Shown: positions 1 to 25,601 of the stretch, in pieces | How the letters are laid out: each line of letters starts with the position of its first letter | Position numbering within the stretch: the stretch's first letter is position 1 | Virus record (IMG/VR): IMGVR_UViG_3300044712_001255 | Coordinates: 1-64,000 of that record | Direction: 5' to 3' (one strand) | DNA length: 64,000 nt | Notes under the pieces: model-generated | Database searches by the model: none | What the model was told of the DNA's origin: nothing | What the model saw: only the letters and a program-made list of their open reading frames with translations | Position numbers and translations under genes: made by a program

Positions 1-919
1 CAATGTTGATATGCTGGCGTGGTACGTTATCACGATCAAATTTCGGTAGAGCACTGGTTATTTGCGTCACATCAATCAACGGTGGATTGTCATAATCTTC
101 AAGCGAATACTCATATGGACATTGCTCGTTAAGCCCAATACCCCAGTCACGTACTATCTCCTTGGTGCCACCATCCAACGAGTGAATTACGGGTAAACCG
201 CAGGCAATTGCCTCAACTACCACGTTTGGACAGTGATCTAACCAAGCAAGGTGCAACATGTAATCAGCTTGACGATACATCTGTAAGCAAGCTTGATGAT
301 TCACATTTCCAGTGAAAAATACGTGTGGTTCACAATCTCTGATGTGACATTTCGTCGGAGAAGAACCCATAACGATCAAACAACTACGTGGATAGAAACT
401 TCTACGTAAGTGAGCAAACATTTCGTAGTTTGATCGAAGACGTTTTTGATTGTGCCAATTTGACGATGCAACAAAAATCTTGTCGTATGATTGACGTATC
501 GGTGTCAAGTCTACAGTTGTCTGATTACGAGGCACCTTGAATACATTGTCAACTTCAAGAAGGTCAATACCATTTGAAATTACGACAAATGACTTTGATT
601 GTCCCCACCACTTGGTGACCTGTGTAGCATTGAATTGTGATTGGAAGATGACTACATTGGCACGATGGTAGGCTGCTTTGATACCCACGTTCTTGTGCAA
701 GAATTCGCGAGGGCTAAACCATACACCATCTAAACGTTGCGCAAATGGTTTTCGTGGGTCTGCTCGAGAAGTCGGCTCAATGAACGTAAGTGAAACGTCA
801 TAATCAACAAGATCTGCGATGACATGACCACGATTAGCTAAAGCTTTTGCTATCCTTCCACCAAACGTATTTGGACCAGAGCGAGACGTAAAGTCAATTC
901 CATCAAACAGAACTTTCAC
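1..919 (-). CDS. Glycosyltransferase, GT4-like (GT-B); partial, runs off the left end
   Basis: Not in ORF track. Manual translation from GTG at 919 (MKVLFDGIDFTSRSGPNTFGGRIAKAL...) is open to the window edge and contains DHCPNVVVEAIACGLPVI, the GT4 C-terminal Rossmann motif. Confidence 0.85.
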   Translation of the reverse strand, partial: MKVLFDGIDFTSRSGPNTFGGRIAKALANRGHVIADLVDYDVSLTFIEPTSRADPRKPFAQRLDGVWFSPREFLHKNVGIKAAYHRANVVIFQSQFNATQVTKWWGQSKSFVVISNGIDLLEVDNVFKVPRNQTTVDLTPIRQSYDKIFVASSNWHNQKRLRSNYEMFAHLRRSFYPRSCLIVMGSSPTKCHIRDCEPHVFFTGNVNHQACLQMYRQADYMLHLAWLDHCPNVVVEAIACGLPVIHSLDGGTKEIVRDWGIGLNEQCPYEYSLEDYDNPPLIDVTQITSALPKFDRDNVPRQHINI

Positions 920-922
920 AAC

Positions 923-1312
923 CTAGTTCCTCTTTTTAATTGCTGCAACGATCTCTGCGGCGACAGGCGTTCCACGTAAAAATAGAGCACAATGAGCAAG
1001 TTCCTTTGTGCTCATGTCACTAGTTTTGGGACGCTTGTCGAAGATATTTGGGTCAAGTGCTTCTTCTCGACCGTTGATGGTGACCATGTCATAATACGCT
1101 TGAGATACGTAATTTACGCCAACGTCTGTCATGTGAGCCTTCAACGCAGGCACAAGAATGACAATTTCCTGCACGGTGAGAAAGATTTTCTGATAGATCT
1201 CAATGCACGCTGCCTTGTCAAGTGAACGATCCTTGTCGACAAATTCCTCGCTCAGCCTATCTTTTAACATCGCAGCTACAAGCTTATGAATCTCTAATGA
1301 TCTATCAGTCAT
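923..1312 (-). CDS. Hypothetical protein
   Basis: ORF 923..1366; start moved to ATG 1312 (MTDRSL) because of a GAGGT SD and overlap with the upstream stop. Confidence 0.7.
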   Translation of the reverse strand: MTDRSLEIHKLVAAMLKDRLSEEFVDKDRSLDKAACIEIYQKIFLTVQEIVILVPALKAHMTDVGVNYVSQAYYDMVTINGREEALDPNIFDKRPKTSDMSTKELAHCALFLRGTPVAAEIVAAIKKRN

Positions 1313-2291
1313 TGCATACCTCTTTGATGTACTCACAATACAAGCGAATACTTTCCTTCCAATCAATCAACACAGAATTGTTTTGTATAGGCAAAGATCT
1401 CAAACAATTGGCTCTTTTGGCGCTTAGATCAATGTCTAGCAATTTCACAAGATGATCAAAATCATCATAAGTGTATGATGAATCATTCACAAATTCAACA
1501 GCACCACCACCATCCTTGTGTACGTAAACGGGCAACTGACACGCTAAAGCTTCAAGAATGTGATTAGGACCAGGATCGAAACGTGATGCTGACACATACG
1601 TGTCGTACTTCCCAAGTTCATCTCCCAAGCGTCGACCAGACAATGGCCCAATCACCTTAGTATTTTTGAAAGTGTTTCGATGACGACCAATGTACGTAAA
1701 CGTAAAATCATCTTGTCTTGACGCAACGAGACGATCAAGGGCATCGTAGATATCAAATCCCTTTAGCTCATTGTTTGACCAATGATGGGCTACGATATTA
1801 AGACGCTGTGTTTCTTGCGTCAAGCTTGCATCATTGATCTTCTCATTCAACTTGAAGATATCACGATCAACTCCATTGATGATTACAGAGTTTTGCTGAC
1901 ATTGCCACCTAGAACCATAATACGATCGCAGCCACCTACTGACCCACACAGTTGCGTCAACGTACTGAGACGCTTTGATCCAAACGTCATCCACCCCTCT
2001 AGTAGCTTTACGTGCATCATTCTCGTTGACTCGTAGAATCAACTTGAATTTTTCGCCTTGACTTTCCTGCAACATCTTGTAACCAATCAAACGACCAACG
2101 CCGAGACCGGTAGTTTGCTGATCATCGTCCAGCGCAATTACGAGCGCAGCATCAGGAGGCGTCATATGATCATCAGGTGGAACAATATGCACATCAAATT
2201 CCTCGGCATATCGATACAGGGCCTGCACAAACATATTGCCACCGCCCCAAGGACCACGAACTGGAGCGCGATTCACGTATAGATTGATCAC
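1305..2291 (-). CDS. Glycosyltransferase, GT4-like
   Basis: N-terminal GPWGGGNMFV; C-terminal YVSASRFDPGPNHILEALACQLPV and KGFD motifs. Confidence 0.88.
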   Translation of the reverse strand: MINLYVNRAPVRGPWGGGNMFVQALYRYAEEFDVHIVPPDDHMTPPDAALVIALDDDQQTTGLGVGRLIGYKMLQESQGEKFKLILRVNENDARKATRGVDDVWIKASQYVDATVWVSRWLRSYYGSRWQCQQNSVIINGVDRDIFKLNEKINDASLTQETQRLNIVAHHWSNNELKGFDIYDALDRLVASRQDDFTFTYIGRHRNTFKNTKVIGPLSGRRLGDELGKYDTYVSASRFDPGPNHILEALACQLPVYVHKDGGGAVEFVNDSSYTYDDFDHLVKLLDIDLSAKRANCLRSLPIQNNSVLIDWKESIRLYCEYIKEVCND

Positions 2292-2533
2292 TTGTCTTTT
2301 CCGTTGTTGATTAGCGTACCCACAGCGGATGCGCTATAGTCGATGTTTGATATAGAAACACGTAGATGCTCATGTACAGCTTGCAACGCAGAAGCAATTC
2401 GCATCGCTGCGTCTCGTTGTTCATCAAGTTTCTTGCGCAAAGAAGCAACCTCACCTTCAAGAACATTGATACGTTGTCGAAGGTTATCAGCTTCTGCCCA
2501 TGCTATTGCAAGGTGCTCATTGTTATCCGACAT
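2288..2533 (-). CDS. Small coiled-coil protein
   Basis: 81 aa with heptad pattern; overlaps both neighbouring genes. Confidence 0.7.
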   Translation of the reverse strand: MSDNNEHLAIAWAEADNLRQRINVLEGEVASLRKKLDEQRDAAMRIASALQAVHEHLRVSISNIDYSASAVGTLINNGKDK

Positions 2534-3263
2534 AACCTCTACCTCTCAAGAACTCTGCCTCTGAGCGCTGGAATTTTGCGTCTGACGTTTGATACGTCTC
2601 AGGCACGTCATCAATCGTATAATGATACATCACACGCGGTATGAACACACGTCGCTTAGCGCGATGTAGACATGGTAAGTAAATTGCTTGGTCACCTGCA
2701 CGGCGTATGTAGGCGCCGTCTTCACCTCTGAAGTTCTCATCATGAACTCCAGAAATTAGACTCTTACGAAATGTCTTTAAATGACTTGACACCCACGGAT
2801 GTTTGTATGGGTCAGCGCCTTCTTGCATTGGTGCGCTGATGTTCTTGTCAGAGAATCCCCATCGATGAGCTGTCCACGCTATATCACAGCCAGTCTGATT
2901 GTAATACTCATTGATGATGTAGAGCGCATCAAGGTCTGTCAGCCAATCATCAGCGTCTATGCGGCAGACGATATCATCTTCTTCACACTCTTTGATTCCA
3001 GAAAGTACGTTTGCAACTTCCCACAATTTTTCCGTATTGAAACGAAGACTAATACGCTTGCAGCCACTTTCTTTGAGGGACTTGAATCGTGTGACAATCC
3101 GAGAACATTCAATACGTTGGTCGTAGTCGGACATATCGTCAATCAATATCAACTTCCAATACGGATACGATTGCCCGACTAACGAATGCAACAATGTTGG
3201 CAACGTGGATGACGCGTTGTAACACGGCGCAATGAAAACAAATTGGTTATTTGTTGTCACCAC
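2523..3263 (-). CDS. Glycosyltransferase family 2 (GT-A)
   Basis: FIAPCYNA...LIDDMSD N-terminus and RIDADDWL DxD motif. Confidence 0.92.
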   Translation of the reverse strand: MVTTNNQFVFIAPCYNASSTLPTLLHSLVGQSYPYWKLILIDDMSDYDQRIECSRIVTRFKSLKESGCKRISLRFNTEKLWEVANVLSGIKECEEDDIVCRIDADDWLTDLDALYIINEYYNQTGCDIAWTAHRWGFSDKNISAPMQEGADPYKHPWVSSHLKTFRKSLISGVHDENFRGEDGAYIRRAGDQAIYLPCLHRAKRRVFIPRVMYHYTIDDVPETYQTSDAKFQRSEAEFLRGRGYVG

Positions 3264-3982
3264 TCTCCCTCAACGCCGGGGGCCGTGAGAAGCACCTGCC
3301 CGTAATCAATTTCATCATCTGATTTGCCTCGTTCATCAAGAAACATTCGCCTGTCCATGATGATGAGTTCCTTACTAGCAAACTCTATCTCATCGATCAA
3401 GCGTTTGCACTCAATATCTGGAGACGGGGGGTTGGTGTGATAGTCGTCAAATAAGACGAACTTCCAATTTCGATCCTTTACCAATTCCCAGTCGAGCTTT
3501 GTAGCTGCGTACGAATGATCACCATCAACGTACGCAAAATCTACGTTCAGATCCTTCAGCTCTCCAGCTAATACGTCGCCAGATTTACCGCGATAGAAGT
3601 TGATGTTCTTAAACCACTCGTGTGGAAAAATACCAGTCAACCCCTTGACGTATTCTTCACTAAGATTTGGATCGATTGTGTAGACTTTACCATCATCTCC
3701 ATTGTCAACCATTGCCTTGGCGGCACACATTGTGCCGTACCCACGACCAAAGCCGATCTCAAGGAAGCTCTTTAGCTTGAACTTTCTGATGAGATAATAG
3801 ATGAGAATTCCTCTTTCATAGTTGCTGCGATAGAACGCACCATACTTTGCGTAGTTGGGTTCATCTGGGCGGCGATTACGCTTTGCTGTAAATTCTGCTA
3901 TTGAGTCAAAGTCGCCCAACACAATAGAATCAAGCGCAACGTCAATTTGAACAAGCTTGTCTTTGATATTGATTCTCTTCAT
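3257..3982 (-). CDS. Class I SAM-dependent methyltransferase (Methyltransf_24-like)
   Basis: FLEIGFGRGYG motif I and FAYVDGDHSY. Start moved to ATG 3982 (TAATG overlap, GAGGAAG SD). Confidence 0.88.
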   Translation of the reverse strand: MKRINIKDKLVQIDVALDSIVLGDFDSIAEFTAKRNRRPDEPNYAKYGAFYRSNYERGILIYYLIRKFKLKSFLEIGFGRGYGTMCAAKAMVDNGDDGKVYTIDPNLSEEYVKGLTGIFPHEWFKNINFYRGKSGDVLAGELKDLNVDFAYVDGDHSYAATKLDWELVKDRNWKFVLFDDYHTNPPSPDIECKRLIDEIEFASKELIIMDRRMFLDERGKSDDEIDYGQVLLTAPGVEGEW

Positions 3983-5925
3983 TACTTCCTCACGATCTTG
4001 GGCTCTGACATTGCGATCTTGATGCTTGGCGTGTGTTGGCCTGTCCACTTGCTGTGGAACACATGACCACCGGTGAGCGCTGACAGAGAAATAGCCAACA
4101 TCTTAATCATTTCATCCGTGACATCTGCCCATGGCACACCGAAAAACATGTTATTCTCAGCGGTATCTGCTGATGACTTATTGTAGAGGTCGTTCCAATG
4201 ATTCTGCCAATAGTCTCGATATAAACGTATCTTCCGTTCCATGTCATACCAGCTGTAGTGGAAGACACTCGGTACATCACGAACAATCTGGTTCATCACT
4301 TCCTGGTACTTCTGCAATGCACCGTCCTGATTATTGAGCGCAGCTTGTCGCAGCCCCTCAAGTTCAGCGTTCCAAAATGTGATGTGTGGAATTGGATCAC
4401 CAGTTTCGGTGTGAATTAGATCACATCCGTCAGTTCCTGGGCGAGCGTAAAGTTCTCCCTTGTCATCTTGCGCACGTAACTGACGTGGAATACCGTGAGT
4501 GATATACGGCTTGTTACGTGTCAAACGCCACTTCCACGGAGTGACGTCGATTCGTACCTTGTCTGCGCTTCCCCAATACTCAACAACAGGGAGACATACG
4601 ACATCAATTCCTGACGTTATTGATCGGCAAACTTCCTTCACCTTTTCTACGTGATCTTCATGGACAATTTCATCGCTGTCCATTTGCCAACAAAATTCCT
4701 TTGTGCACATTTTGCGAGCTTCGGCTTTTTGCATCCCGTCAAAGATTGCATGTCGAGGCGCAGCCCAATCACGAGGAATTTGTTTCACTTTCAAACGTTC
4801 GATTACAGACCCGTCGATTTCGTTAAATCGTTGGTACCCAAGCGCCATTTGTTGTAGAACGCTCCACGTTCCGTCTGTTGATCCACCGTCTACGACGCAA
4901 ACCTCATCGCAAAACTGCAACATAGATTCAATACATTCACGAAATGGATATCCTTGTTGCTTGCAATTGTAAGTCGTTGTGTATCCAGAAATGCTGGGCA
5001 CGTAATCGATGATCTTCTTGATGCTGTTCCAAAAAAGACCTGGAGCTGCATAGAGATATTGTTCGATCTCCTCTAAGTTGTCTGTTGCAAACCACTCTTC
5101 ATCCTTGTGCTGAACGTAGTTGTTAAGCTGCAGCTGACAACCTAAAAGTTTTGCTTCGATGACAAGACGTGGACATGTGTCAGCGCCCATAGGTAAATAC
5201 ACGAGTCCTGTACACGCTGCCAGCGTTGCAAGTAATTCATTGTAAGGCTTGTTCCAAACGACTGTGGTAGGCTTGTCATTGTCCTTTGCCCACTGCATTG
5301 CTTGGGAATACCCCTTAATTGGAGAATTTGAGCCAAGTACTACCCACTCCGGCGAGCGTTCCTTCCCGGCTGAAAGTTCACGTAACACTTTAATCTTTGC
5401 AAGCGTCTCAGCAGAGAGCACTGAGCTCAAGACGATATTGTCTCGTTCTGCGAGAAACGGAAACATTGTATGATAGCGAGCCTGCTGAGCTTCTGACATC
5501 CAATAAAGAGCTTGGGCGCCTAAGAAGAACGCAGATACCATCTTTCCATGCATTTGGTTGTGGCAATCGCATGGAACTTGTTCTGCGGCGAAATGAATCT
5601 CAGGTGACCTGTACTTGCAATATTTGTAGTCATATTCAAGCACTGCGTACTTGATGTTTCCAACGATAGTTGGAATCAACTGCATATTCATCTGCGTCCA
5701 ATTGCCGAAGATCCAAAACTTTTGGTGTGCTTCCTGCAAAAGCTTGATTGTTAGGTCCTTTGAATGAAGCTTAAACACCTTGAAAGGTGAAGAATCGATC
5801 AAAGCCTGAGTTGTTAGTTCGGCACCACCCACGTAGTCTTCAACAAACATGTCTGATACAACGACAATGTCTGTGTCTTCTGGGATGCTGATAGAATCGA
5901 ATAGTTGCTGGGATATGTTGAACAC
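3982..5925 (-). CDS. Bifunctional GT4-like + GT2 glycosyltransferase fusion
   Basis: N-half: SDMFVEDYVGGAELT...DTCPRLVIEAKLLGC. C-half: GYTTTYN...VVDGGSTDGT...QMDSDEIV. Start set at GTG 5925 from promoter geometry; ORF track start is 5982. Confidence 0.85.
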   Translation of the reverse strand: MFNISQQLFDSISIPEDTDIVVVSDMFVEDYVGGAELTTQALIDSSPFKVFKLHSKDLTIKLLQEAHQKFWIFGNWTQMNMQLIPTIVGNIKYAVLEYDYKYCKYRSPEIHFAAEQVPCDCHNQMHGKMVSAFFLGAQALYWMSEAQQARYHTMFPFLAERDNIVLSSVLSAETLAKIKVLRELSAGKERSPEWVVLGSNSPIKGYSQAMQWAKDNDKPTTVVWNKPYNELLATLAACTGLVYLPMGADTCPRLVIEAKLLGCQLQLNNYVQHKDEEWFATDNLEEIEQYLYAAPGLFWNSIKKIIDYVPSISGYTTTYNCKQQGYPFRECIESMLQFCDEVCVVDGGSTDGTWSVLQQMALGYQRFNEIDGSVIERLKVKQIPRDWAAPRHAIFDGMQKAEARKMCTKEFCWQMDSDEIVHEDHVEKVKEVCRSITSGIDVVCLPVVEYWGSADKVRIDVTPWKWRLTRNKPYITHGIPRQLRAQDDKGELYARPGTDGCDLIHTETGDPIPHITFWNAELEGLRQAALNNQDGALQKYQEVMNQIVRDVPSVFHYSWYDMERKIRLYRDYWQNHWNDLYNKSSADTAENNMFFGVPWADVTDEMIKMLAISLSALTGGHVFHSKWTGQHTPSIKIAMSEPKIVRK

Positions 5926-5931
5926 GTTGCT

Positions 5932-5960
5932 ATCGTACACCGTGATGATGTTTGTGTTCA
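5932..5960 (-). promoter_or_regulatory. Sigma70-like promoter TGAACA-17-TACGAT, 6 nt upstream of GTG 5925 (predicted leaderless)
   Basis: Hexamers and spacing read directly; the -35 is identical to that of the primase promoter. Confidence 0.65.
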
Positions 5961-5995
5961 ACCCGCGTCGACGCGGTTTCATCTAGATTTAAATT

Positions 5996-6024
5996 TTGAC
6001 CATTTGCCTTGTCCAGAGTAGAAT
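5996..6024 (+). promoter_or_regulatory. Sigma70-like promoter TTGACC-17-TAGAAT
   Basis: Near-consensus hexamers with 17-nt spacer, upstream of the GroEL-like gene. Confidence 0.7.
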
Positions 6025-6072: not shown

Positions 6073-7314
6073 ATGTCAAATACTACTAATCTAGTTAATG
6101 TACTTGCGGACGTGTACGCGGGCGAGGAACTTTCATGCGCAAAACGCAAAGAATTACTTTCGTTATATGATCTCATTCAAGACAAATTGATGCTATCGCA
6201 TGGCGAAGTGTCAATCGCTCAGGGATCTTCATTTGATGTGAAGACTAATGATGCAATACACGCCAGACTGCGTGAAATGATCTTGTCATTTGCCACGAAT
6301 GCTGAGGTGATTGGCCCAGGATCATTTACACATGTGATAAAGAATGCTATTGAACAACGTGGAGATGTGTCTACGTGGAGAAATGCTATTGATGGTGGTG
6401 CCACACGGCCAACGTTACTTGACGTTGAATGGCTCATAAATGAGCTTAATCTTGGTAACCTTCGCCACGCATTTGAAGAAGCTGTCAACTTTGCAGGGTT
6501 TGCCGGCCGAATCAAAGTTGAACAAACATCACATCATTTACCGATTGTTGAAAAATCACGTGGGTATACGTTTGATGTCAACGTCAATTCTACGTTCATT
6601 GGAAAATTTCGTGATGTTCGAGTTGTTGCGATTGACGGATTTCTAGAACATGAGTCTGAGGTTCACGGTCTATTAGAGTCATCTCACAATGCAAAAGAAC
6701 CATTTCTGTTATTCATTCGTGGAATGTCGCAAGATGTGGAACACACAATTTCCGTGAATTGGCAACGTGGAACATTACGTGCTATTCCAATCATTGTTCC
6801 ATTCGATGTTGATGGGATCAACATGATAAATGACATTGCCGTGGTATGCGGTACTGATGTTATTTCTTCTCACAAAGGACAACTAATATCAGCTGTGAAA
6901 TATTCTGACCTTTCGTACGTACCTGAAGTTGATGTTTGGGCAAATAGAATCACGATAATAAATGCTGCAACTCGTGTAGCAGTGAACCTACAAATACAAG
7001 AACTTAGACGTAAGCGTTCTGACGTCAAAGATGAATTGACTTCACTTTATGATAAGCGTATAAAGTCACTGTCGCCTGGACTCGTGACGATCAAAATACC
7101 AGATGGTGTTATGTTTCGCTGTAATCGACAACGAGTGGATTTTGCATTACGAGCGTACAGAAGCCTGGTGAATCACGGCACTGTGATCGTGAATGACGAA
7201 AAAATGTTGCTTGACACAGCGGTGGCAGTGACAACATATGCTCCAAAGTTAGTCGCAGCGCTAGATGATCTTGGTGCAGTGATTAACGTTTGTGCTTCTC
7301 AGGCTTCACAGTAG
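6073..7314 (+). CDS. Degenerate GroEL/chaperonin-60-like protein
   Basis: Apical-domain match (EPFLLFIRGMSQDVEHTISVNWQRGTL...INDIAVVCGTDVIS) and KRIKSLSPGLVTIKI...RVDFALRAYRSLVNHG. ATP motifs are degenerate and the protein is only 413 aa. Confidence 0.8.
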   Translation: MSNTTNLVNVLADVYAGEELSCAKRKELLSLYDLIQDKLMLSHGEVSIAQGSSFDVKTNDAIHARLREMILSFATNAEVIGPGSFTHVIKNAIEQRGDVSTWRNAIDGGATRPTLLDVEWLINELNLGNLRHAFEEAVNFAGFAGRIKVEQTSHHLPIVEKSRGYTFDVNVNSTFIGKFRDVRVVAIDGFLEHESEVHGLLESSHNAKEPFLLFIRGMSQDVEHTISVNWQRGTLRAIPIIVPFDVDGINMINDIAVVCGTDVISSHKGQLISAVKYSDLSYVPEVDVWANRITIINAATRVAVNLQIQELRRKRSDVKDELTSLYDKRIKSLSPGLVTIKIPDGVMFRCNRQRVDFALRAYRSLVNHGTVIVNDEKMLLDTAVAVTTYAPKLVAALDDLGAVINVCASQASQ

Positions 7315-8167
7315 CAACTTGCTGCATGTTACCACCTGCGTATGCCTTGATCACTTCCCCAGCTTCTTCTGGTGGTTTACCCTTTAGATCTTCTACGGCT
7401 TTTCTTGATAGCTTCTTTTGCTTGTCAGGAGATACTGAAGCGCGTTGTTGCGCTTCTTGATGTTTTCTCTCTGATTTTGCCTGCGCTACTTGCTTGTCTA
7501 TTTTGCCTGACAATACCTGTGAATCTTTGTCAAGTTGATCGAATGTCTTTTGCAACTTGATTACAGACATCGGAGAAATACGTAGAATTTCGTCTGGTGA
7601 CGCGTCAACTTCGACATCAAGTTGTTTCAGCTGTGTTGAAATATCATCAACGATACTCTCAATTGTCGTATTTTTTTCATCATCTGACATCTTTGTGTTT
7701 GTTTGCAAAGAAACGTCAATGATATCTTGCAAAGATGAGTTGGTATTTAGTTGTTGCTGTATGCCGATCTTATATGAATCTGTAAGAAACATAGATTTCA
7801 ATCCGGTCAAAATTGTATTGATCTTTTGCATTACTGCGACTAATGACGGGAATGCCGCAGAAACATCTTTGCTTTTGCCAGATTGATCTATTTTCTTGTT
7901 CAGAATCGGAATTTTGTCGTCATTAAATGTCTGAGAGTCAGCCTCTCTCAACGCGGCAAACAATACTTTGTGAATTGCGTCAGATAACGCATCATTCGTA
8001 TCGTTCTTAAGTGAATTGTCAATGTCTAACAATTGCTTGTAGAACTTCTTGAATAACAACGTTGTTTGTGCATCAAAGAATTGTCGAGGCTGTCTAGTTT
8101 CACCAGCTTCTTTCAAAACAATCAGATTACGCATCAATCGTCTAGATCTTAGTGTCTGATGGTCCAT
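7283..8167 (-). CDS. Hypothetical helical protein, possible internal head protein
   Basis: 294-aa ORF with N-terminal VLKEA motif; convergent 32-nt overlap with the GroEL-like gene. Confidence 0.7.
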   Translation of the reverse strand: MDHQTLRSRRLMRNLIVLKEAGETRQPRQFFDAQTTLLFKKFYKQLLDIDNSLKNDTNDALSDAIHKVLFAALREADSQTFNDDKIPILNKKIDQSGKSKDVSAAFPSLVAVMQKINTILTGLKSMFLTDSYKIGIQQQLNTNSSLQDIIDVSLQTNTKMSDDEKNTTIESIVDDISTQLKQLDVEVDASPDEILRISPMSVIKLQKTFDQLDKDSQVLSGKIDKQVAQAKSERKHQEAQQRASVSPDKQKKLSRKAVEDLKGKPPEEAGEVIKAYAGGNMQQVATVKPEKHKR

Positions 8168-8170
8168 GAC

Positions 8171-8199
8171 GTTTACGTAGATAGGTAGGTGGTTAGATT
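8171..8199 (+). promoter_or_regulatory. Sigma70-like promoter GTTTAC-17-TAGATT
   Basis: Same GTTTA(C/T)-17-TAnAnT form recurs at 11514 and 28530, with TTTTAC at 49857. Confidence 0.6.
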
Positions 8200-8218
8200 G
8201 TATCTCAGGAAGACTTCC

Positions 8219-8494
8219 ATGTCAAACACTGAAGCTATTTTGAAAAACTTTCGTGACGTTTCTTTGAATGCAAAGGATTCTACAAAGCAAATGTTTGTAG
8301 CAGCTGTACGATCAAAGAAGCTTACGCTGAGCGACGCTCAACTTGCACTTGTGTTTCAAATCATTGACGCAGGTATCGATAATGCTTGGGGAAATTCCGA
8401 GAAGATGATGAAGAATGTTATCGCAAAGGCGATTACTGAACCAGCTGCGACAACGCCGGCAACAAAGGCACCAGCAAACCCAAAAAAGAAATGA
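8219..8494 (+). CDS. Hypothetical protein with Ala/Pro/Lys tail
   Basis: ORF 8189..8494; ATG 8219 has an AGGAAG SD and lies downstream of the promoter. Confidence 0.7.
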   Translation: MSNTEAILKNFRDVSLNAKDSTKQMFVAAVRSKKLTLSDAQLALVFQIIDAGIDNAWGNSEKMMKNVIAKAITEPAATTPATKAPANPKKK

Positions 8495-8534: not shown

Positions 8535-8996
8535 ATGGCGAACGGCATTAAGCATTTGATTAGATGCAGGTGTGTCCTGCCTCAGTTCAAGAACTCAAAT
8601 TCTCCCCCGCAGCATCGGTTCATTGTGTTTTCTGTAGTAAATGATGATGATTCTGTTGTGCCAAAGTTTGCGCAATGCAACAACTGCGGAATCATTCACA
8701 AGGTCATAGACGTTTGTCGCTCAGAGTTTACGACAAAAGAAGATATGACATCATTAAAAACGATCGAAGATGTTAAAGCTTCGATTCCTGAGAAGGCTGC
8801 GTTAGCCCTTGAACGTCACAGAGCTGATTTAGCTACGTGGGAAGCCGTGCAATTCATTATAGAAAATAAAAAGTGGGGTGAAGTGGTTGTATTGTCAACT
8901 GACGAGGCAGAAGGCTTGCGACAGGGGAAATACATTCACATTCTTGGCGAAAGCTTGTTTAAGATAGAATCTTTCGCATCGGAGTACGCAATATGA
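8535..8996 (+). CDS. Hypothetical protein, putative zinc-binding
   Basis: CRC...CNNCG...C cysteine pattern. Confidence 0.7.
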   Translation: MANGIKHLIRCRCVLPQFKNSNSPPQHRFIVFSVVNDDDSVVPKFAQCNNCGIIHKVIDVCRSEFTTKEDMTSLKTIEDVKASIPEKAALALERHRADLATWEAVQFIIENKKWGEVVVLSTDEAEGLRQGKYIHILGESLFKIESFASEYAI

Positions 8997-9235
8997 ACAT
9001 TGGTGAGTTTTCTTCCGAGCGTGATGCAAAGGAAAATCTAACGGCTCGGCAAATTGTGCAAGAGGTTTTGAACTTTGGTGTGAATGACAGGATGATTTTG
9101 CTGATCATACACCAACTAGCGCTTAATCTCGAGAACGTCGAGCACATGAAAGCAGTCGCTCGAGCTGTGGCAGGACTACAAAGCAACGTGTTTCTGATGG
9201 ATCGAACAGATGACGGAGAACTAAAAGATGGGTAG
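8993..9235 (+). CDS. Hypothetical protein
   Basis: ATGA overlap coupling with the upstream gene. Confidence 0.7.
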   Translation: MNIGEFSSERDAKENLTARQIVQEVLNFGVNDRMILLIIHQLALNLENVEHMKAVARAVAGLQSNVFLMDRTDDGELKDG

Positions 9236-9821
9236 AATTGTCGTAAAATCACAGGCAGGTGTTACACGTCCGAGAATGGCGACAACTATCAAGTTGCCAT
9301 TGATGGCTGGGAATTCTGAATCTAGGCTGGTGTATTTGACTGGAGATGTGACAGAAGAATCTATAGCTGAAGTACAGCGTACCATCTTAGATCTTTCGAC
9401 TCACAGCAAGCAGCCAATTCATCTTGTCGTATCCACATACGGTGGCGCCGTGCATGAAATGTTCTCATTGTATGATGTGATGAAGTTTGTGCCATGTCCC
9501 ATTCACACAGTTGCACTTGGTAAGGTGATGTCTGCTGGTAGCCTAATTTTTGCTGCTGGTGAAAAGGGCAATAGGTTGATTGGTGCGTCAACAAGGGTGA
9601 TGATTCACGCATTGTCGGCTGGATTCTATGGCAATTACTTTGAACTTCTAAACAGCGTTGATGAAGTGAAGGAATTGCAGAGGATGTATGTTGAGCGTTT
9701 GGCAAGGGAGACAAAGATGTCTCCAAAGAAGATTGAAGACTTGCTGAACTCAAAACTCGACATGACGATAACGCCAAAGCAAGCAGTTGAACTTGGTATC
9801 GCAGATCGCATCATTGAGTAA
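9228..9821 (+). CDS. clpP: ClpP protease proteolytic subunit
   Basis: RLVYLTGDV, STYGGAV, GKVMSAGS (Ser), VMIH (His), LDMTITPKQAVELGIAD (Asp); catalytic triad intact. Confidence 0.93.
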   Translation: MGRIVVKSQAGVTRPRMATTIKLPLMAGNSESRLVYLTGDVTEESIAEVQRTILDLSTHSKQPIHLVVSTYGGAVHEMFSLYDVMKFVPCPIHTVALGKVMSAGSLIFAAGEKGNRLIGASTRVMIHALSAGFYGNYFELLNSVDEVKELQRMYVERLARETKMSPKKIEDLLNSKLDMTITPKQAVELGIADRIIE

Positions 9822-12492: not shown

Positions 12493-12572
12493 AAGGAAGA
12501 CAATTCCTCTTTTCTATGTTAGAATGTAATCACAAGCCGATTGCATGTACAAAACGATCGCGCAGGGAACAA

Positions 12573-13958
12573 ATGCAGAAAACGTACGTCATCGATACAA
12601 ATGTGTTGCTAAGTGATCCCAATGCTCTTCAATCATTTGAAGACAACTCTCTCATAGTTCCTCTCGCAGTATTAGAGGAACTTGATAGGCATAAGAATAG
12701 ACAAGATGATGTTGGCGCTTGCGCACGTCAAGTGAACAGAAATCTTGACAAGTTGCGAGAAAAAGGAAACTTGCTAGAAGGCGTTAAGACTGCCGGTGGT
12801 GGTACATTACGCATAGCAAGCATCGATCCAAACGCAACGTTACAGTTACTACCTCCAGAACTTGAGGGCGCAAAGGTCGACAATTTGATCATTGCGTTTA
12901 TGTTACAACAACGTGCATCAGGTAATCAGTCAATTTTGGTGTCAAAAGACATCAACGTTAGAATAAAGTGCGATGCGCTTGGAATCAAATGCGAAGATTA
13001 CAAGAAGATGCGTGTTGCCGATGATCCTAAAAAGTTCTATCGTGGCGTTGTTGTACACGAAGTATCAAAAGAGTTCATCAATCAATTCTACGCTGATGGT
13101 GGCATCACGCCAGATCCTTCTTGGGAATTGTTTCCAAATCAGATCGTTGTGTTGAAGAATGTCAGTGGAAATCAGACGCAATCTTCTGCGATTGCACGAT
13201 TTGTTTCTGTTGAGGAAAATGATCGTTGGCTACGGCCCACCCTAAAAATCGAATCTAGTTTTGGGTTGAGGCCTAGAAACAAGGAACAGAATTTTTCTCT
13301 CGACCTCCTGTATGACCCAAGCATCAAGTTGGTGACGCTTGTTGGCCCGTCTGGTACTGGTAAGACATTATTGGCAATTGCTGCCGGCCTTGAACAGAAT
13401 GTTCATATCGGTGATAAGAAGCTAGCAAGGTACGGTAGACTTGTTGTCACCCGTCCAGTTCAGCCAGTGGGTAGAGATATCGGTTTCTTGCCGGGTTCTT
13501 TGTATGAAAAAATGGAGCCTTGGCTCGCTCCTGTGCGTGACAACTTGGCGTTTCTGATGTCAAGTGGAGGCAAAAAGAAGCCTCAGATGAAAGCGACTGA
13601 TGCCTCTGGACAACGCATTGATCCGTACATGTCATTGATGATCGAAAAGGGTGTCATTGAGATCGAGGCGATCTCGTACATCAGAGGCAGATCAATCCCA
13701 GATTCTTATATCGTGATTGATGAAGCACAAAATTTGACGATTCATGAATTGAAGACAATCATCACACGTGTGGGAGAGAACACCAAGATCATTCTTACGG
13801 GTGATATTGAGCAGATCGACAACGTAAACGTCGATGTTTTTAGCAATGGGTTGTCTTATGCTATCGAGAAGTTCAAGAACACACCCATCGCTGCACACGT
13901 TACGCTTCTAAAGGGCGAGCGCAGCGAGTTAGCTACAATAGCAGCACAACTTCTATAA
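12573..13958 (+). CDS. phoH: PIN-domain + PhoH-family ATPase (YlaK/PhoH2-like)
   Basis: VIDTNVLL...EELDRHK...SKDINVR (PIN); GPSGTGKT, GFLPG, YIRGRS, IDEAQN, GDIEQID (PhoH). Confidence 0.93.
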   Translation: MQKTYVIDTNVLLSDPNALQSFEDNSLIVPLAVLEELDRHKNRQDDVGACARQVNRNLDKLREKGNLLEGVKTAGGGTLRIASIDPNATLQLLPPELEGAKVDNLIIAFMLQQRASGNQSILVSKDINVRIKCDALGIKCEDYKKMRVADDPKKFYRGVVVHEVSKEFINQFYADGGITPDPSWELFPNQIVVLKNVSGNQTQSSAIARFVSVEENDRWLRPTLKIESSFGLRPRNKEQNFSLDLLYDPSIKLVTLVGPSGTGKTLLAIAAGLEQNVHIGDKKLARYGRLVVTRPVQPVGRDIGFLPGSLYEKMEPWLAPVRDNLAFLMSSGGKKKPQMKATDASGQRIDPYMSLMIEKGVIEIEAISYIRGRSIPDSYIVIDEAQNLTIHELKTIITRVGENTKIILTGDIEQIDNVNVDVFSNGLSYAIEKFKNTPIAAHVTLLKGERSELATIAAQLL

Positions 13959-14015: not shown

Positions 14016-15011
14016 ATGAGCGGTATTCTCGACAGCAAGACAAGAGTTTTAGACGTAGTTCTAACAGATGAGGGTCGTCGACAACTTGCATCTGGTAAGC
14101 TACGTCTAAAATATGCGTCATTCACGGATGACGGTGCGTTCTATCGTGCAGATGACGACGGTGTGACTGCTGATGACGCCACGCAAAGATTGTACCTTGA
14201 GAATTGTGAGCTCCCTCAGGACCAGGTGACGTTTCAATCAAACGTTGCAGGTAAAGTGACTCCGTTTAAAAACATCAGCGGTATTACGATAGCTGACGGC
14301 AAGATCATTTCAAATATCTCAAGCTCATTGCTGACGGGATCTAATGATGGATTGATTCTGTCTGGCAGTGATCTTGTTGTGTCTGTTGACGAGTTGCTCA
14401 ACGCATCTATTGACAGCTTCACAAAGCTACGAACTATTGGCACGGTGAATCATCTTCTAGATGATTTCAACTTCGCCGTTTCAGAGAATTCAATACGTTT
14501 TGTTATCACCAATGACAAGCCATTAGCAAAAACGCAACGAAAGATAGCTAACATCACTCAACTCGAGGGGTTGATAGCAGATCCACGCTTTAGTAATCAA
14601 GCAAATTTCCAGTTTTTGCCACCCATACAACGTATGTCTTCTGTCATTGACAAAAAGGACGTTGCTACAATCATTAAAACTTATGGCGTAGGTGACTATG
14701 TTCCTTGGGGGCTTACTTCTCCATTGACGATTTCAAACATAAATGATGAATTGTCGTCGTACGCCAATTTAGGTTTCAGCAAACGTATCAAGTTTGATCC
14801 AACTTCATATGATAATACGTTGTTTGGACAATTCTTTGAACAAACGGAGAATGAATTACGTAAGCTTGACGTGATTGATTACGGAACACATGCGTACGTT
14901 GGCGAGAGCGGACGTGATGTTTGGCAACACGTATTTTTTGCCGGTCGTATGTTGGTGGATGATAACGGAGATGATACGTTCATTCACTACTTTACGTTAG
15001 TGTTTTCTTGA
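14016..15011 (+). CDS. Putative baseplate/tail structural protein
   Basis: N-terminus GILDSKTRVLDVVLTDEGRRQLA is paralogous to that of 23612; lies in the virion cluster. Confidence 0.6.
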   Translation: MSGILDSKTRVLDVVLTDEGRRQLASGKLRLKYASFTDDGAFYRADDDGVTADDATQRLYLENCELPQDQVTFQSNVAGKVTPFKNISGITIADGKIISNISSSLLTGSNDGLILSGSDLVVSVDELLNASIDSFTKLRTIGTVNHLLDDFNFAVSENSIRFVITNDKPLAKTQRKIANITQLEGLIADPRFSNQANFQFLPPIQRMSSVIDKKDVATIIKTYGVGDYVPWGLTSPLTISNINDELSSYANLGFSKRIKFDPTSYDNTLFGQFFEQTENELRKLDVIDYGTHAYVGESGRDVWQHVFFAGRMLVDDNGDDTFIHYFTLVFS

Positions 15012-15019
15012 GGTGAACG

Positions 15020-17503: not shown

Positions 17504-20500
17504 TACGAAAGCAAACGTTTCACTTAACGTTAACATTGCGACAATAGTGCCCTGGAACGTCGCCAATAGCACGCCAAATACGACATCAGTGACTACGTCT
17601 GTTTCAAAGACTAAGTCTGAGACGTACTTGTTAGCCACAAATCGTCATTTTTCTGGTGGTACATTAGGATCACAATTCTCAACAATATCACAAATCATTA
17701 CGAATATTGCTGATTTTAAGATTAGCACATCAAGTCCGGGCACGGACTCTAAGAGGGCGTACTTGAGTTACACGCATCGTGGTAACAATGTCATTCCAAA
17801 TAAACCTCTAACTGTGCGTCAATTTGATAACGTTGAAAAACTACTTGGTGTTGTACGAACGAGACCGGAAGTTATCATGGTCTCAGAATTCGTACCGCTG
17901 TATAACAAGTTAGATAACACAAATGGTACACGTACACAAACAGATGCAGGCGCATACGTAGACGCTAAGTTTGATTGGCACTCCATACAAAGACAAAAGC
18001 TTAGCAACATCTTGAATGGTGTTTTTTCAACTGCAAATGAGCAAGATACTAATGAGATAACAACGCAATTTGCAGACTATTCAAAGAAGATTGATCAAAT
18101 CATAACAGTTGCTCAAGATCTACAGGCGATCATTAACAAGGCGAATACAACAAAAAAGCAATTTGACTTCAGGAATCTACCATATCCAAGCATTGAGAAT
18201 ACTTTGCAAGGCAACTGGAGCACGTACGACACATACGTCGACCCAAATAACAAAAGTGTAACGCTAACAAAGAAATCAGCGCTATTGAGTTTTGCGCAAG
18301 CTTCATGGGGCGACAGCGTATCACTTGCGCAGTTTCTAGGATTGATGGGATATCAGAATGACAACATTGAACAACAATACACTTCCACCAAGGTATGGTT
18401 GCAAGCGTTGTATGAAGCAAAGTCAATGTTTGAAACGCATTCTTTGTCGTTAGCTGATCTGTCAAAAGTACAACAAGCAAGAGACACAAATTCATCAAAG
18501 TTATTGAAACCACCAGGGCGTTTCATGTTTAATGATACGTCAAATAGCTTCGATAAGGAATCAATACCAACCATCACTGAGATCATCAGTATGACGACAA
18601 CGTCAAATCTGAGCAGAAGATCTTACTTTTCAAATGTAATAGCTGGCGCATATGTCAGTTTGTTTCGTGAAATCCCGGGTGGTGATGTCATTAACGCGTC
18701 AACGTATTTGACATTGCTTAGCAAGGAATTTCGTTACAGCTATGGGTTAGCGACCAACAACGGACTAGGATCATTTTTTCGTAACATAGGATTTATCTCT
18801 CAAACAGCTGCGGCTCCTGGCGCAAATTTGAGCGTTTTTGCAAACATATTTGGTACGCTATTTGATTTTCCAACTACTGATCGTATCTTGATTGAAAACA
18901 ATTTCAATAATCAGTCGCTAGCGTCAATGTGTTGGACGTTTGACAAAACGCGTAATAACGGGCTCGTATTGAACACGCAGGCAATTGCAACAAATGGTGT
19001 GCAATCTGGCGCAGAATACTACGTTGACAGCGTGTTTGACATTGCAAATATTGTAGACGCTAATAAAGCATTTGATTTGACACGTGTCAAAGATTACGTT
19101 ACTGTAATCGATCAGAAGCTTACCAATTTACGTGGCGCTGCCCGAGCAATGAATTGGTTGTCAGAAAAGTATGATGAGAAAAAGGTCAACGCGGGCGGCA
19201 TAGAAGACCCGGCATTATACTATGATTATGTTTGGAAATTCTTTGTAGACAAAGATTCACAAATGATTCGTACGAATGACGGTATAGTTTCAGCGTTGAT
19301 GCGTTTAGCGAGGGATGATTATGAAATACGATCATGCTTGTTTGTGCTTATTCTAAACTTAATTTCAAGAGCAAATTTTGGTGGCACGTTTCCACCATGT
19401 ACCAACACGGCAGAACGCGATAACACAATCACACAGTTGTCACAAAAAATCATTTATCTGCTTGGACGAAAAGCGAATGTGTCATCAAAGAAGATAACTG
19501 TGAGAAATACGTCAATTGATTATGAAGCTAGGGCGTATGCTAAAAATAATAGTGGATGTTCAGAGGATGACATTCATGAAATTTTGACGCTACGAACGAA
19601 GGATTCAACGCTCGATTCGCTCATAATCTTTATGAAGTCCGTTTACTCAGCATTCAAAAGAAGCGGTGTGATATCTGGCGAAAATCGTACCATGTATTCT
19701 GGCGCAAAGGACACGGTTGTGTTAATGACCGTATTTCATGTTATTTGCATGATCTTTAAGCGTCATTCAAATTTCAAATTTGATATATCGAATCGTGTCA
19801 ATCTAACGGTGATTTCAGAAAAAAATCAACCACGCACATATGATGTTATTGTTGACAACTATGTTGTAGGACCAAATCTCATTAGCGTCAAGAGCGGACA
19901 AAAAATCGTCAAAAAGACGTACGATGCGTGGGTGTTCTCAGCATCAAAGGTGAAGCAAATCTTTACGTTAACAAATGATCAAGCAGTTTCTCAACAAGCA
20001 ACGACGAATCTTTACAACGCTCGTGTTCTAAATCAACAAATGATCACAAGCAAGTTGAATGCAGAGAAAGCTTTGCACATAGCTGGGTACGTTGCGTTGT
20101 TTGGTACGATAAAGCAATTTAGAGACAATCTACAATCGTTCATCTCTTTCGTAGAGATGCGTGAGACTACAAATGGATTCCAGAATATCTTGACACTCAT
20201 ATCAGGGTTGAGGCCAGAATATCGTAACATTCTGTTCTCAGAACAACAATTAATGTTGTTGATTTCTTCAGCATATGATGCATTTGGGGCAAATCAATTG
20301 CAACAACGCGCGCACCGTCACTGGACAGAGCCCGCAATCAACCAGCCTAGATTTGAGCTTAATTCTCTTGAAGAGAACGTTGTTGATACAAACTTACGTA
20401 ATATGTTCAACGCAACGTTCAATGACGGCATGTTCGCGTCAAAAACAGCAGCGAATAAACACATTATCACTGTTGGTTTACCAACGGGATTCATTGAAAA

Positions 20501-23509: not shown

Positions 23510-23611
23510 ACTGCATGTTGCGATTGAGTACGATATGTTTGATTGGCTGGTATCTCGAGCGTAAGGGATACATATTGGTGCGGTTGAAGCAGCAAAGGAC
23601 TAGATAACAAC

Positions 23612-24328: not shown

Positions 24329-24339
24329 GGAGTTAGAAA

Positions 24340-25578: not shown

Positions 25579-25601
25579 CGTTGCCATGTGCGTTGTGAAC
25601 G

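Follow-up and report, generated by a model that had tools for sequence, protein, structure and literature searches.

A shortened GroEL paralog that lacks the ATP site in a giant soil phage that also carries a canonical GroEL

Results

Gene content and organization of the locus

The window analyzed in this work is a stretch of 64,000 nucleotides that corresponds to positions 1 to 64,000 of the 324 kb phage record IMGVR_UViG_3300044712_001255. It includes a gene encoding a short GroEL-like protein of 413 aa (hereafter sGroEL), which is divergent from a glycosyltransferase gene and is followed, after a variable insert, by a group of co-directional genes that includes a small helical ORF (orf101), a Cys/His zinc-ribbon protein (orf153), a second small ORF (orf80), and a ClpP-family protease (Table 1). 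The sGroEL ORF is intact, starts with ATG and ends with a stop codon at 7312-7314.

Table 1. Features of the sGroEL locus, with coordinates in the window and the data that support each one
Feature	Position	Strand	Supporting data
sGroEL gene (413 aa, P0001), including the stop codon	6073..7314	+	ORF; GroEL homology by sequence and by predicted fold; intact in all 76 related viral loci; dN/dS 0.07-0.18
N-terminal equatorial remnant (residues 1-135): N-terminal strand, stem-loop-like hairpin, shortened helix D; GroEL T30-K34 loop and Asp52 deleted	6073..6477	+	hhalign gaps at GroEL 30-36, 52-53 and about 95-104; 1.20 bits per site; model strands 11-16, 39-42 and 45-48
GPGSFT loop (residues 81-86), remnant of the GDGTTT phosphate/Mg loop; Pro82 replaces Asp87	6313..6330	+	Family at the Asp87 position: P138 A17 S7 T1 V1 of 164; best-conserved part of the equatorial remnant, 2.53 bits
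First intermediate-domain segment (residues 136-163)	6478..6561	+	Aligned to GroEL about 164-191; 2.32 bits per site
Apical domain (residues 164-336), with hinge Gly164 and the helix H and helix I equivalents	6562..7080	+	VIA Z 22-23, rmsd 2.1-2.5 A to isolated GroEL/Cpn60 apical domains (5cdj, 1kid, 1fya); 2.25 bits per site, helix I 2.84
Second intermediate-domain segment (residues 337-369), including the helix M equivalent and hinge Gly369	7081..7179	+	Aligned to GroEL 376-410
VDFAL (residues 355-359), equivalent of GroEL VEDAL; Phe357 replaces Asp398, Asp356 at the Glu397 position	7135..7149	+	Family at the Asp398 position: Y62 R25 V11 L9 N9 F8 K8 and others; D356 in 163 of 164, R360 invariant
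C-terminal equatorial remnant (residues 370-413): two short strands, one helix, a final strand; GroEL 411-491 missing	7180..7311	+	Model elements E370-373, E376-379, H380-399, E402-407; structural alignment runs to GroEL 526; a locally confident hhalign sub-alignment places residues 362-410 on GroEL 485-527
Sigma-70-like promoter match (TTGACC, 17 nt, TAGAAT) upstream of the gene	5996..6024	+	Weak: such matches in the region are not above shuffled controls
Convergent 294 aa ORF overlapping the last 32 nt of sGroEL; variable insert	7283..8167	-	No Pfam, PHROG or NCBIfam match; a reverse ORF of 176-529 aa in this position in 39 of 73 loci; no tblastn match to the window's copy
orf101, small helical ORF just upstream of orf153	8189..8494	+	A same-strand small ORF (mostly 67-104 aa) in the gap in 69 of 73 loci, 40 of which form one BLAST family
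orf153, Cys/His zinc-ribbon protein	8535..8996	+	Downstream on the same strand in 73 of 76 sGroEL loci; invariant H7, C11, C13, C48, C51, H55; AF2 pLDDT 91.7
orf80, small helical ORF	8993..9235	+	In 64 of 76 loci; no family match
ClpP-family serine protease, last gene of the conserved cluster	9228..9821	+	Pfam PF00574 E 4e-34; NCBIfam ClpP subfamily 108 bits and head-maturation variant 58 bits, both below cut-off; in 63 of 76 and 70 of 78 loci
666 aa family-2 glycosyltransferase, conserved upstream neighbour	3982..5982	-	Pfam PF00535; upstream on the opposite strand in 60 of 76 loci

The order sGroEL, small ORF, orf153, orf80, ClpP is near-invariant, and it is kept in 63-73 of 76 loci even though the sGroEL proteins share only 25-45% identity. 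The linkage was also evident when the search was started from orf153; in this case, 69 of 70 loci showed sGroEL upstream, and the remaining locus showed a weak hit. Nonetheless, the whole block, including the helicase, PIN-PhoH and the glycosyltransferase, is syntenic across the lineage, and ClpP is absent from about 13 loci that keep sGroEL and orf153. No Clp-type AAA_2 unfoldase was found in the record, which does encode a tmRNA whose tag ends in AAA. The model of orf153 did not show a match above noise in the PDB (Foldseek E of 0.07 or worse, best VIA Z of 3.9), and the hits to zinc ribbons such as LysW and Tim15 are below noise and are not considered evidence. For orf153, no match was found in Pfam, PHROG, NCBIfam or PDB sequences, a search of the protein atlas gave only unnamed viral clusters, and the protein is not GroES-like. 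Pfam and PHROGs gave no match for the other small neighbours, nor for the large ORFs located at 14-28 kb. No RNA sequencing run was listed for the sGroEL gene.

sGroEL is a member of the GroEL/Cpn60 superfamily

The homology of sGroEL with GroEL is far above chance. A phmmer search against the GroEL chains of the PDB gave an E value of 1e-11 over residues 134-374, the family profile gave 1e-26, and hhalign gave probabilities of 99.4-99.7%. The AF2 model (pLDDT 84.7) matches GroEL chains over its whole length (Foldseek E 1e-23; VIA Z 21-23.5), with residues 10-409 of the model placed on GroEL 2-526, in agreement with the three-domain equatorial, intermediate and apical fold. In contrast, the protein is below the curated thresholds of this family: no hit to PF00118 was obtained at E up to 10, and the NCBIfam GroEL models (the family is also represented by TIGR02348) scored 32-52 bits against cut-offs of 352-1041; only PHROG 5725 (chaperonin groEL) matched, over residues 177-371.

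The initial annotation proposed that this protein keeps GroEL landmarks but reads GPGSFT instead of GDGTTT and VDFAL instead of VEDAL, that its equatorial domain is shortened, and that no GroES gene is nearby; this observation is confirmed by our analyses. GPGSFT aligns with G86-D87-G88-T89-T90-T91 in three independent profile alignments, VDFAL aligns with V396-E397-D398-A399-L400, and KRIKSLSPGLVTIKI aligns with GroEL ERVAKLAGGVAVIKV. The protein is about 135 residues shorter than GroEL and all of the loss is in the equatorial domain. Only one of the proposed landmarks was wrong: VNVLAD (residues 8-13) is not the homolog of GroEL V20-D25, given that profile and structural alignments place residues 11-17 on GroEL 3-9, and that this hexamer is absent even from the 76%-identical relative; it is a coincidence.

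The ATP pocket is lost across the family

The loss of the nucleotide pocket goes further than the two aspartates. Asp52 and the TLGPKG loop (T30-K34) are deleted, GGG414-416 is not conserved, and N479/A480/D495 are removed with a deletion of about 80 residues (GroEL 411-491) that includes adenine contacts. By alignment, the inter-ring contacts (helix D end; E434, R452, E461-V464) are also lost, since the 411-491 segment that carries these residues is absent and helix D is about 10 residues shorter. In the 164 relatives analyzed the position of Asp87 is never acidic, and that of Asp398 is aromatic or variable; an invariant Asp (D356) is located one position before the lost Asp398. The profile alignments did not show intact acidic residues at these positions, and the relatives did not show decay, two of the outcomes that could have argued against the initial annotation.

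Conservation in sGroEL is shifted to the apical and intermediate domains, with 2.25-2.32 bits per site against 1.20-1.22 for the equatorial remnants, whereas canonical GroELs show 3.09, 3.11 and 2.65. Two of the three hinge glycines are retained, G164 (156 of 164) and G369 (164 of 164), which correspond to G192 and G410 of GroEL. In the apical domain T225 and N229 (GroEL T261 and N265) are invariant, and R232 (R268), L201 (L237) and V228 (V264) are kept; however, L234 is replaced by His/Asn (H198 in sGroEL), V263 by Lys/Arg (residue 227), and L259 is mixed, so only part of the hydrophobic client-binding set of GroEL is kept. In addition, there are invariant apical residues that GroEL lacks, such as H198, the D188-G189 pair, E192, and D254. 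The conserved motif LAGFAGR was considered as an IGF-like loop, but this reading was discarded because it aligns with the structured VGKEG turn of GroEL.

The N-terminal strand, the stem-loop-like hairpin and the C-terminal strand, which in GroEL knit neighbouring subunits into a ring, are retained in the model and the alignments. A complex prediction for two copies of sGroEL, using a 137-row alignment, returned a score of 0.00 without an answer, which is neither support nor evidence against self-association. The template-free model superposes on GroES-bound or football-complex subunits with rmsd of 4.6-4.8 A, against 12.6-13.2 A for closed apo GroEL, although this open arrangement is a feature of a predicted monomer and may not be the only state.

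Distribution of sGroEL and coexistence with a canonical GroEL

The family is large (about 700 clusters at 50% identity score at E 1e-30 or better), it was found only in phages, and occurs in a lineage of uncultured jumbo phages. No member was found in 50,697 cultured-phage records, among which 248 encode GroEL, nor in BFVD. A search of genome contigs using orf153 as a proxy for sGroEL gave only four MAG contigs. The family appears not to have been described previously; it lacks a Pfam or NCBIfam model and its members are labelled either hypothetical protein or, misleadingly, chaperonin GroEL.

The same phage encodes a canonical GroEL of 526 aa at positions 187579-189159 of the complete record, about 180 kb apart from sGroEL. 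It has intact GDGTTT and IEDAL motifs (Pfam E 5e-66), shares 42-45% identity with bacterial GroEL, and keeps the GroES-binding residues. A canonical GroEL is also present in the five relatives that are at least 84% complete; therefore, the pairing occurs in 6 of 6 near-complete genomes, and no Cpn10/GroES gene was found in any of the six. This co-occurrence is confounded by shared ancestry, since both may simply be core genes of one lineage. A search for close relatives of the full-length GroEL in viral contigs found only three loci. The short family is a long branch; its profile shows no preferred sister group and no special affinity for the full-length GroELs of this lineage (67-105 bits, against 90 bits for Salmonella GroEL).

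Discussion

From these analyses we conclude that the locus encodes a genuine and selectively maintained member of the GroEL/Cpn60 superfamily that has been reduced to a core without the nucleotide pocket and the inter-ring interface, and that it accompanies a canonical GroEL, without GroES, in every near-complete genome of its lineage. These conclusions rest directly on the sequence comparisons and the predicted fold, whereas the absence of ATPase activity, the binding of other proteins, the expression of the gene, the oligomeric state and any partnership are inferred. The interpretation given in the initial annotation is partly supported: a pseudo-chaperonin that lacks the catalytic aspartates can be stated even more strongly, given that the whole pocket is dismantled across the family under purifying selection, and GroEL-type ATPase activity is therefore very unlikely; its two functional proposals, a holdase or a subunit that co-assembles with or inhibits the host GroEL, remain only possible. 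The canonical GroEL of the phage would be a more natural partner than that of the host, and the partial conservation of the apical groove fits a specific partner better than a general holdase.

We infer that sGroEL cannot run an ATP-driven folding cycle and that it works as an ATP-independent binding module, with the conserved helix H/I groove as the working surface. The conserved GPGSF loop, together with the invariant Asp356 and Arg360 on the helix M equivalent, may hold the intermediate domain clamped on the equatorial remnant, and this would fix an open, GroES-bound-like arrangement. The most likely role, to which we assign tentatively a probability of about 0.45, is the capture or presentation of one or a few specific phage clients for the canonical GroEL of the phage, as BBS6 and BBS12 do for CCT, a precedent for chaperonin paralogs with a degenerate ATP motif that hand a client to the canonical chaperonin (PMC5534436). 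If the protein forms rings, they should be single rings. This partnership is inferred, not shown; the two genes lie about 180 kb apart, whereas the tight neighbours of sGroEL are the zinc-ribbon protein and ClpP.

Other explanations seem less likely. sGroEL could be inserted as a non-catalytic subunit into the heptameric rings of the phage or the host GroEL, to tune allostery, client range or lid dependence, much as the inactive ClpR subunits in plastid ClpP rings; the retained ring-knitting elements and the coexistence with a canonical GroEL agree with this idea, and pseudoenzymes commonly pair with active paralogs, but the equatorial remnant that would form the interface is the least conserved part of the protein, it lacks about 110 residues of the domain and would leave a gap in a GroEL ring, and the profile scores do not reveal a special affinity for the GroELs of the lineage. 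Equally unlikely on present evidence is that sGroEL, alone or with orf101, orf153 and orf80, acts with ClpP as a seven-fold ATP-independent cap or adaptor that captures substrates and matches the symmetry of the ClpP heptamer. The conserved cluster, the absence of an AAA_2 unfoldase in the record and the tmRNA are in favor of this possibility, given that ssrA-type tags are ClpP degrons; in contrast, adjacency is not specific in a block that is syntenic as a whole and ClpP is missing from some loci, no ClpP-docking IGF-like loop is evident, orf153 has no recognisable adaptor fold, and degradation of folded proteins through ClpP normally needs an ATP-driven unfoldase, although that of the host could serve.

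The idea that sGroEL is a decoy that sequesters host GroES or poisons host GroEL rings, to redirect the folding capacity of the host, is still less probable. Several helix H/I positions that line the GroES and client groove in GroEL are kept (L237, V264, N265, R268, T261), the model shows the GroES-accepting arrangement and no phage GroES is present, but other groove residues are changed, and the canonical phage GroEL probably needs host GroES itself, so its sequestration would be self-defeating. Similarly doubtful is the use of the fold for something unrelated to protein folding, such as a virion or assembly component or a binding protein for a non-protein ligand, as some GroELs moonlight through their apical domain; the complete loss of the ATP machinery, the new invariant apical residues and the large uncharacterised, possibly structural, genes that follow at 14-30 kb would be consistent with it, whereas the immediate neighbours are not recognisable structural genes and the conserved hinges and groove-lining residues of helix I suggest a chaperonin-like mode of binding. 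A degenerating pseudogene is close to refuted by the dN/dS values, the intact ORFs in 76 of 76 loci and the hundreds of diverged members, and an ATPase that persists through the invariant Asp356 is very unlikely because, besides Asp398, the Mg/phosphate loop Asp, Asp52, the TLGPKG loop, the GGG turn and the adenine-binding segment are all missing, and one neighbouring Asp cannot restore a pocket. A more speculative and improbable possibility, not excluded by our data, is that sGroEL forms a nucleotide-free single seven-fold ring fixed in the open, lid-accepting conformation, which would dock either on ClpP, as a symmetry-matched gate that feeds tmRNA-tagged or unfolded proteins to a protease lacking its own unfoldase, or, apical face to apical face, on the canonical GroEL as a protein lid, with orf153 as its adaptor.

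Chaperonins are the standard example of ATP-driven folding machines, and in this large and old phage family the ATP pocket and the inter-ring interface have been removed while the client-binding end remains under strong selection. Its occurrence with a normal GroEL, and without GroES, in the near-complete genomes makes it a natural experiment on what a GroEL scaffold can do without nucleotide, and it would be a prokaryotic-virus counterpart of the BBS6/BBS12-CCT arrangement. It also shows that these jumbo phages carry a sizeable proteostasis kit that includes GroEL, the short paralog, ClpP and a tmRNA.

In comparison with bacterial GroEL (group I chaperonin; e.g. E. coli GroEL, PDB 1AON/1KP8), sGroEL shares the predicted fold over the whole chain and about 20-27% identity in the apical and intermediate domains, but it lacks the ATP pocket, the inter-ring interface, the GGM tail and a groES partner gene. 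The characterized phage chaperonins (phiEL gp146, OBP gp246, AR9 gp228) are also encoded by jumbo phages without a phage GroES, diverge from cellular GroEL (phiEL gp146 shares 22% identity) and tend towards single rings (PMC7185714, PMC9598537), and that of AR9 is the top structural match of sGroEL in BFVD; nonetheless, these proteins are full-length (about 550 aa) ATPases with an ATP-driven conformational cycle (PMC7185714), whereas sGroEL has no ATP site and exists alongside a canonical GroEL. The 526 aa GroEL of this phage fits the length and ATP-site criteria of that group better, although it is much closer to cellular GroEL than the EL protein is. The chaperonin-like proteins BBS6/MKKS and BBS12 have a three-domain architecture with a degenerate ATP-hydrolysis motif, are fast-evolving, coexist with the canonical chaperonin and are thought to present a specific client (BBS7) to it rather than fold proteins themselves (PMC5534436); sGroEL shares with them the degenerate motif and the coexistence with a canonical paralog, but they are eukaryotic group II proteins that carry insertions rather than deletions and are believed not to form rings, and the similarity is a functional analogy only. 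The GroEL apical-domain minichaperones (residues 191-376; PDB 1KID, 1FYA, 1LA1) act without ATP and superpose well on the apical domain of the model, yet sGroEL is a natural protein that also keeps the intermediate domain and an equatorial stump, and its groove is only partly hydrophobic. Finally, the chlamydial GroEL2 and GroEL3 are extra copies that coexist with a canonical GroEL1 and differ in the ATP-binding/hydrolysis and GroES-binding regions, and only GroEL1 complements a GroEL defect (PMC1892554); these are full-length cellular proteins with point divergence and not a wholesale deletion of the pocket, and the weak hit of sGroEL to the NCBIfam model for variant chaperonin GroEL3 (24.7 bits against a cut-off of 600) does not indicate a specific relationship.

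Results

The predicted protein is a relative of GroEL

The open reading frame described in the initial annotation as a GroEL-like pseudo-chaperonin is intact and encodes a protein of 413 aa that is a true relative of GroEL. A phmmer search against the GroEL chains of the PDB returned E values of about 1e-11 over residues 134–374, and PHROG 5725 (chaperonin groEL) matched residues 177–371 with an E value of 4e-16; a profile built from 25 sequences of the family reached an E value of 1e-26, and profile-profile comparisons gave probabilities of 98.5–99.7%. An AlphaFold2 model generated from the family alignment is confident (mean pLDDT 84.7) and matches GroEL over its whole length, with a Foldseek E value of 1e-23 and VIA-align Z scores of 21–23.5, placing model residues 10–409 on GroEL 2–526. 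In this model, the apical domain alone superposes on the crystal structures of isolated apical domains at 2.1–2.5 Å. The coordinates of this gene and of the other features mentioned in this work are collected in the following table.

Coordinates of the features described in this work. Positions are those of the window, except for the full-length GroEL gene (G000:C1 is the whole viral record, and L002 is a stretch of it)
Feature	Position	Strand
Short GroEL-like protein, 413 aa	6073–7314	+
VNVLAD hexapeptide (residues 8–13)	6094–6111	
Convergent ORF, 294 aa	7283–8167	−
orf153, Cys/His zinc-ribbon protein	8535–8996	+
ClpP-family protease	9228–9821	+
Glycosyltransferase and methyltransferase genes	2–5982	−
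PIN-PhoH fusion protein (PIN_4 plus PhoH)	12516–13958	+
String of large ORFs	14016–28121	+
tmRNA	49473–49830	+
Full-length GroEL, 526 aa	G000:C1:187579–189159, outside the window (L002:901–2481)	

The initial annotation proposed that the two catalytic aspartates of GroEL are replaced in this protein, and both substitutions were found where it had placed them. The residues G81-P82-G83-S84-F85-T86 align with G86-D87-G88-T89-T90-T91 of GroEL in three independent profile alignments, and V355-D356-F357-A358-L359 align with V396-E397-D398-A399-L400 without gaps around them; in addition, KRIKSLSPGLVTIKI is the counterpart of ERVAKLAGGVAVIKV. In contrast, the N-terminal sequence VNVLAD, which had been taken as a GroEL landmark, is spurious. 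The exact hexapeptide is also present in GroEL (residues 20–25), but residues 11–17 of the short protein align with GroEL 3–9 in both sequence and structure, and the hexamer is not conserved in the family, being missing even from the 76%-identical relative; it is a chance match that misled the manual alignment. Apart from this detail, the observation is confirmed.

The nucleotide pocket is lost across the family

To determine how far the loss extends, 164 family members were aligned and mapped onto an enterobacterial GroEL that has the E. coli numbering.

State of GroEL features in the short family (164 aligned members)
GroEL feature	State in the short family
Asp87	Pro 138, Ala 17, Ser 7, Thr 1, Val 1; never acidic
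Asp398	Variable: Tyr 62, Arg 25, Val 11 and others
Glu397 position	Asp in 163 of 164; Arg360 on the same helix is invariant
T30-K34 phosphate loop and Asp52	Fall in gaps
G414-G416	Not conserved
Helix D	About ten residues shorter
GroEL about 411–491	Absent

The C-terminal 45 residues correspond to the last helix and strand of GroEL (about 497–526), and the sequence appears fused between the similar EEG(V) and MG(I)L motifs. The missing 411–491 segment carries N479 and A480 as well as the inter-ring contacts E434, R452 and E461-V464, whose functional roles are taken from the GroEL literature. What remains is the apical domain, both intermediate segments, the hinge glycines G192 (Gly in 156 of 164) and G410 (164 of 164), and the N-terminal strand, a stem-loop-like hairpin and the C-terminal strand; in GroEL these last three elements form the sheet that joins the subunits within a ring.

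The short family is maintained by purifying selection

A word-index search identified 27 relatives of about 400 aa, and an exhaustive profile search returned 5,457 hits with E values up to 1e-3, of which 728 were at 1e-30 or better; the best 150 are all short proteins. Given that canonical GroELs reach at most about 114 bits against the family profile, the 728 hits are probably almost all members of the short family, although this is inferred from the scores. All 76 related loci found in viral contigs hold intact ORFs, mostly of 370–416 aa. The dN/dS ratio for 14 pairs with 70–97% identity is 0.07–0.18, with values of 0.04–0.15 in the apical and intermediate domains and 0.07–0.29 in the equatorial remnants. 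The information content is 2.25–2.32 bits per site in the apical and intermediate domains and 1.20–1.22 in the equatorial remnants, with the exception of the GPGSF loop that shows 2.53 bits, whereas a set of 120 full-length GroELs shows no such skew (3.09, 3.11 and 2.65). These results are not those expected for a decaying gene; selection therefore protects the putative binding end of the molecule together with one loop and one helix that used to surround the nucleotide.

The near-complete genomes that carry the short form also encode a canonical GroEL

The window is the first 64 kb of a viral record of 324,468 bp that is estimated to be 86% complete, and the public runs that hold it are rhizosphere metagenomes. 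The same genome encodes a canonical GroEL of 526 aa in which GDGTTT, Asp52, IEDAL, GGG and the apical hydrophobic set are all intact. This protein is 42–45% identical to bacterial GroELs, and it has a short acidic tail (YEDEE) instead of GGM repeats; the full-length GroELs of related phages likewise lack GGM tails. No Cpn10 was found in this genome. From a search of 19 viral records that carry the short form, it was observed that a canonical Cpn60 is present in all five that are at least 84% complete, two of them closed by terminal repeats, and that it is missing only from fragments estimated at 61% complete or less. None of those five genomes has a Cpn10. Conversely, 248 cultured-phage records have a GroEL, and none has the short form.

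The short form is also absent from BFVD and from the AlphaFold DB clusters, and in the ESM Atlas its neighbours are unnamed, purely viral clusters. The sources that include it refer to it as hypothetical protein or, by automatic annotation, as chaperonin GroEL, and the papers searched on phage and viral chaperonins and on jumbo-phage genomics do not describe it.

Genes adjacent to the short GroEL gene

The surroundings of the short GroEL gene were compared across the 76 viral loci.

Conservation of neighbouring genes in the loci that carry the short GroEL gene
Neighbour	Loci of 76
666 aa family-2 glycosyltransferase, upstream and divergent	60
orf153, downstream on the same strand	73
orf80	64
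ClpP	63
XPD-like helicase	63
PIN-PhoH, downstream of the helicase	64

A small helical ORF, orf101 in the window, usually precedes orf153. In about half of the loci, this window included, a fast-evolving reverse-strand gene is inserted after the short GroEL gene; in the window it is a convergent ORF of 294 aa without family match that overlaps the last 32 nt of the short GroEL gene, and the equivalent reverse ORFs are of 176–529 aa. When the search was started from orf153 instead, 69 of 70 loci showed the short GroEL gene upstream, and the remaining locus has a weak hit. The product of orf153 is highly conserved (40–65% identity), was found on at least 274 viral contig stretches and, in the loci examined, always next to the short GroEL gene, and has invariant His7, Cys11, Cys13, Cys48, Cys51 and His55. 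Its AlphaFold2 model is very confident (pLDDT 91.7), but it has no match in the PDB or in any of the family libraries searched. Contigs carrying the orf153 marker are filed inside bacterial MAGs, i.e. Halobacteriovorax (101 kb), Legionellales, an uncultured gammaproteobacterium, and Methylococcaceae TMED69 (306 kb); these look like phage contigs binned into MAGs, and at best they are a weak hint of proteobacterial hosts.

The record has no Clp-type AAA+ unfoldase. In the ClpP-family protease, Ser, His and Asp appear by eye to be present at the positions of the catalytic triad, but the protein scores below the NCBIfam cut-offs of both ClpP and the ClpP-like head-maturation protease, and a precise role cannot be assigned from these scores. 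The tmRNA was detected with ARAGORN, which gave the tag peptide ANDNATVLRAAA, and Rfam RF00023 matched with 97.1 bits over the full model; with ClpP, GroEL and the short GroEL paralog, the phage carries an unusually broad proteostasis kit. On the other side of the short GroEL gene and divergent from it, there is a run of genes that includes two GT2 glycosyltransferases and a Methyltransf_24, which in relatives is extended by NDP-sugar epimerase/dehydratase and nucleotidyltransferase genes, making a conserved sugar-modification cassette. Further downstream, the window shows a string of large ORFs (331, 827, 1406, 618, 238, 412 and 839 aa) with no Pfam or PHROG match, except for a weak concanavalin-like lectin hit in the last one; they are possibly virion or tail proteins of a lineage far from cultured phages. 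Since the entire block is syntenic in this lineage, adjacency alone does not prove a functional tie.

Discussion

The results presented here show a protein with a predicted GroEL fold from which the nucleotide pocket and the inter-ring interface have been removed, while the hinges and the apical groove are partly preserved, and which is accompanied by a canonical paralog in every genome that is at least 84% complete among those examined. The remaining aspects of its mechanism are inferred. The protein would not bind or hydrolyse ATP in the manner of GroEL, and its function would lie in binding through the apical domain. In this domain T261, N265, R268, L237 and V264 are kept, but His/Asn replaces L234 and Lys/Arg replaces V263, which suggests a narrower and more polar specificity than the general hydrophobic capture of GroEL. 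The template-free model adopts the domain arrangement of GroES-bound subunits, with an rmsd of 4.6–4.8 Å against about 13 Å to closed apo GroEL; it is possible that the conserved GPGSF loop together with the invariant D356 and R360 may substitute for the nucleotide in clamping the intermediate domain. If rings are formed, they should be single rings.

The initial annotation considered this protein an ATP-independent holdase, or a subunit that co-assembles with host GroEL to redirect or inhibit it. Its interpretation is partly supported: the ATP-independent reading is well supported, but the specific roles remain as proposals, and the likely partner shifts from the GroEL of the host to that of the phage. 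The role that we favour is that of an ATP-independent factor that captures or presents clients for the phage's own GroEL, and we assign to this statement as a whole a tentative probability of about 0.45. Among the alternatives, a subunit of mixed rings and a module linked to ClpP seem unlikely and are about equally so; a decoy for host GroES/GroEL and a repurposing unrelated to protein folding are somewhat less likely still, and decay of the gene or a residual ATPase activity is very improbable.

The capture or presentation role follows the documented precedent of BBS6/BBS12 and CCT (PMC5534436). With respect to GroEL itself, the protein belongs to the Cpn60 superfamily by its predicted fold, but judging from its sequence it fails the defining functional features, and it also fails the curated thresholds of GroEL. 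It is best considered as part of a new and apparently undescribed family of uncultured jumbo phages, formed by compact GroEL paralogs that are inferred to be nucleotide-free.
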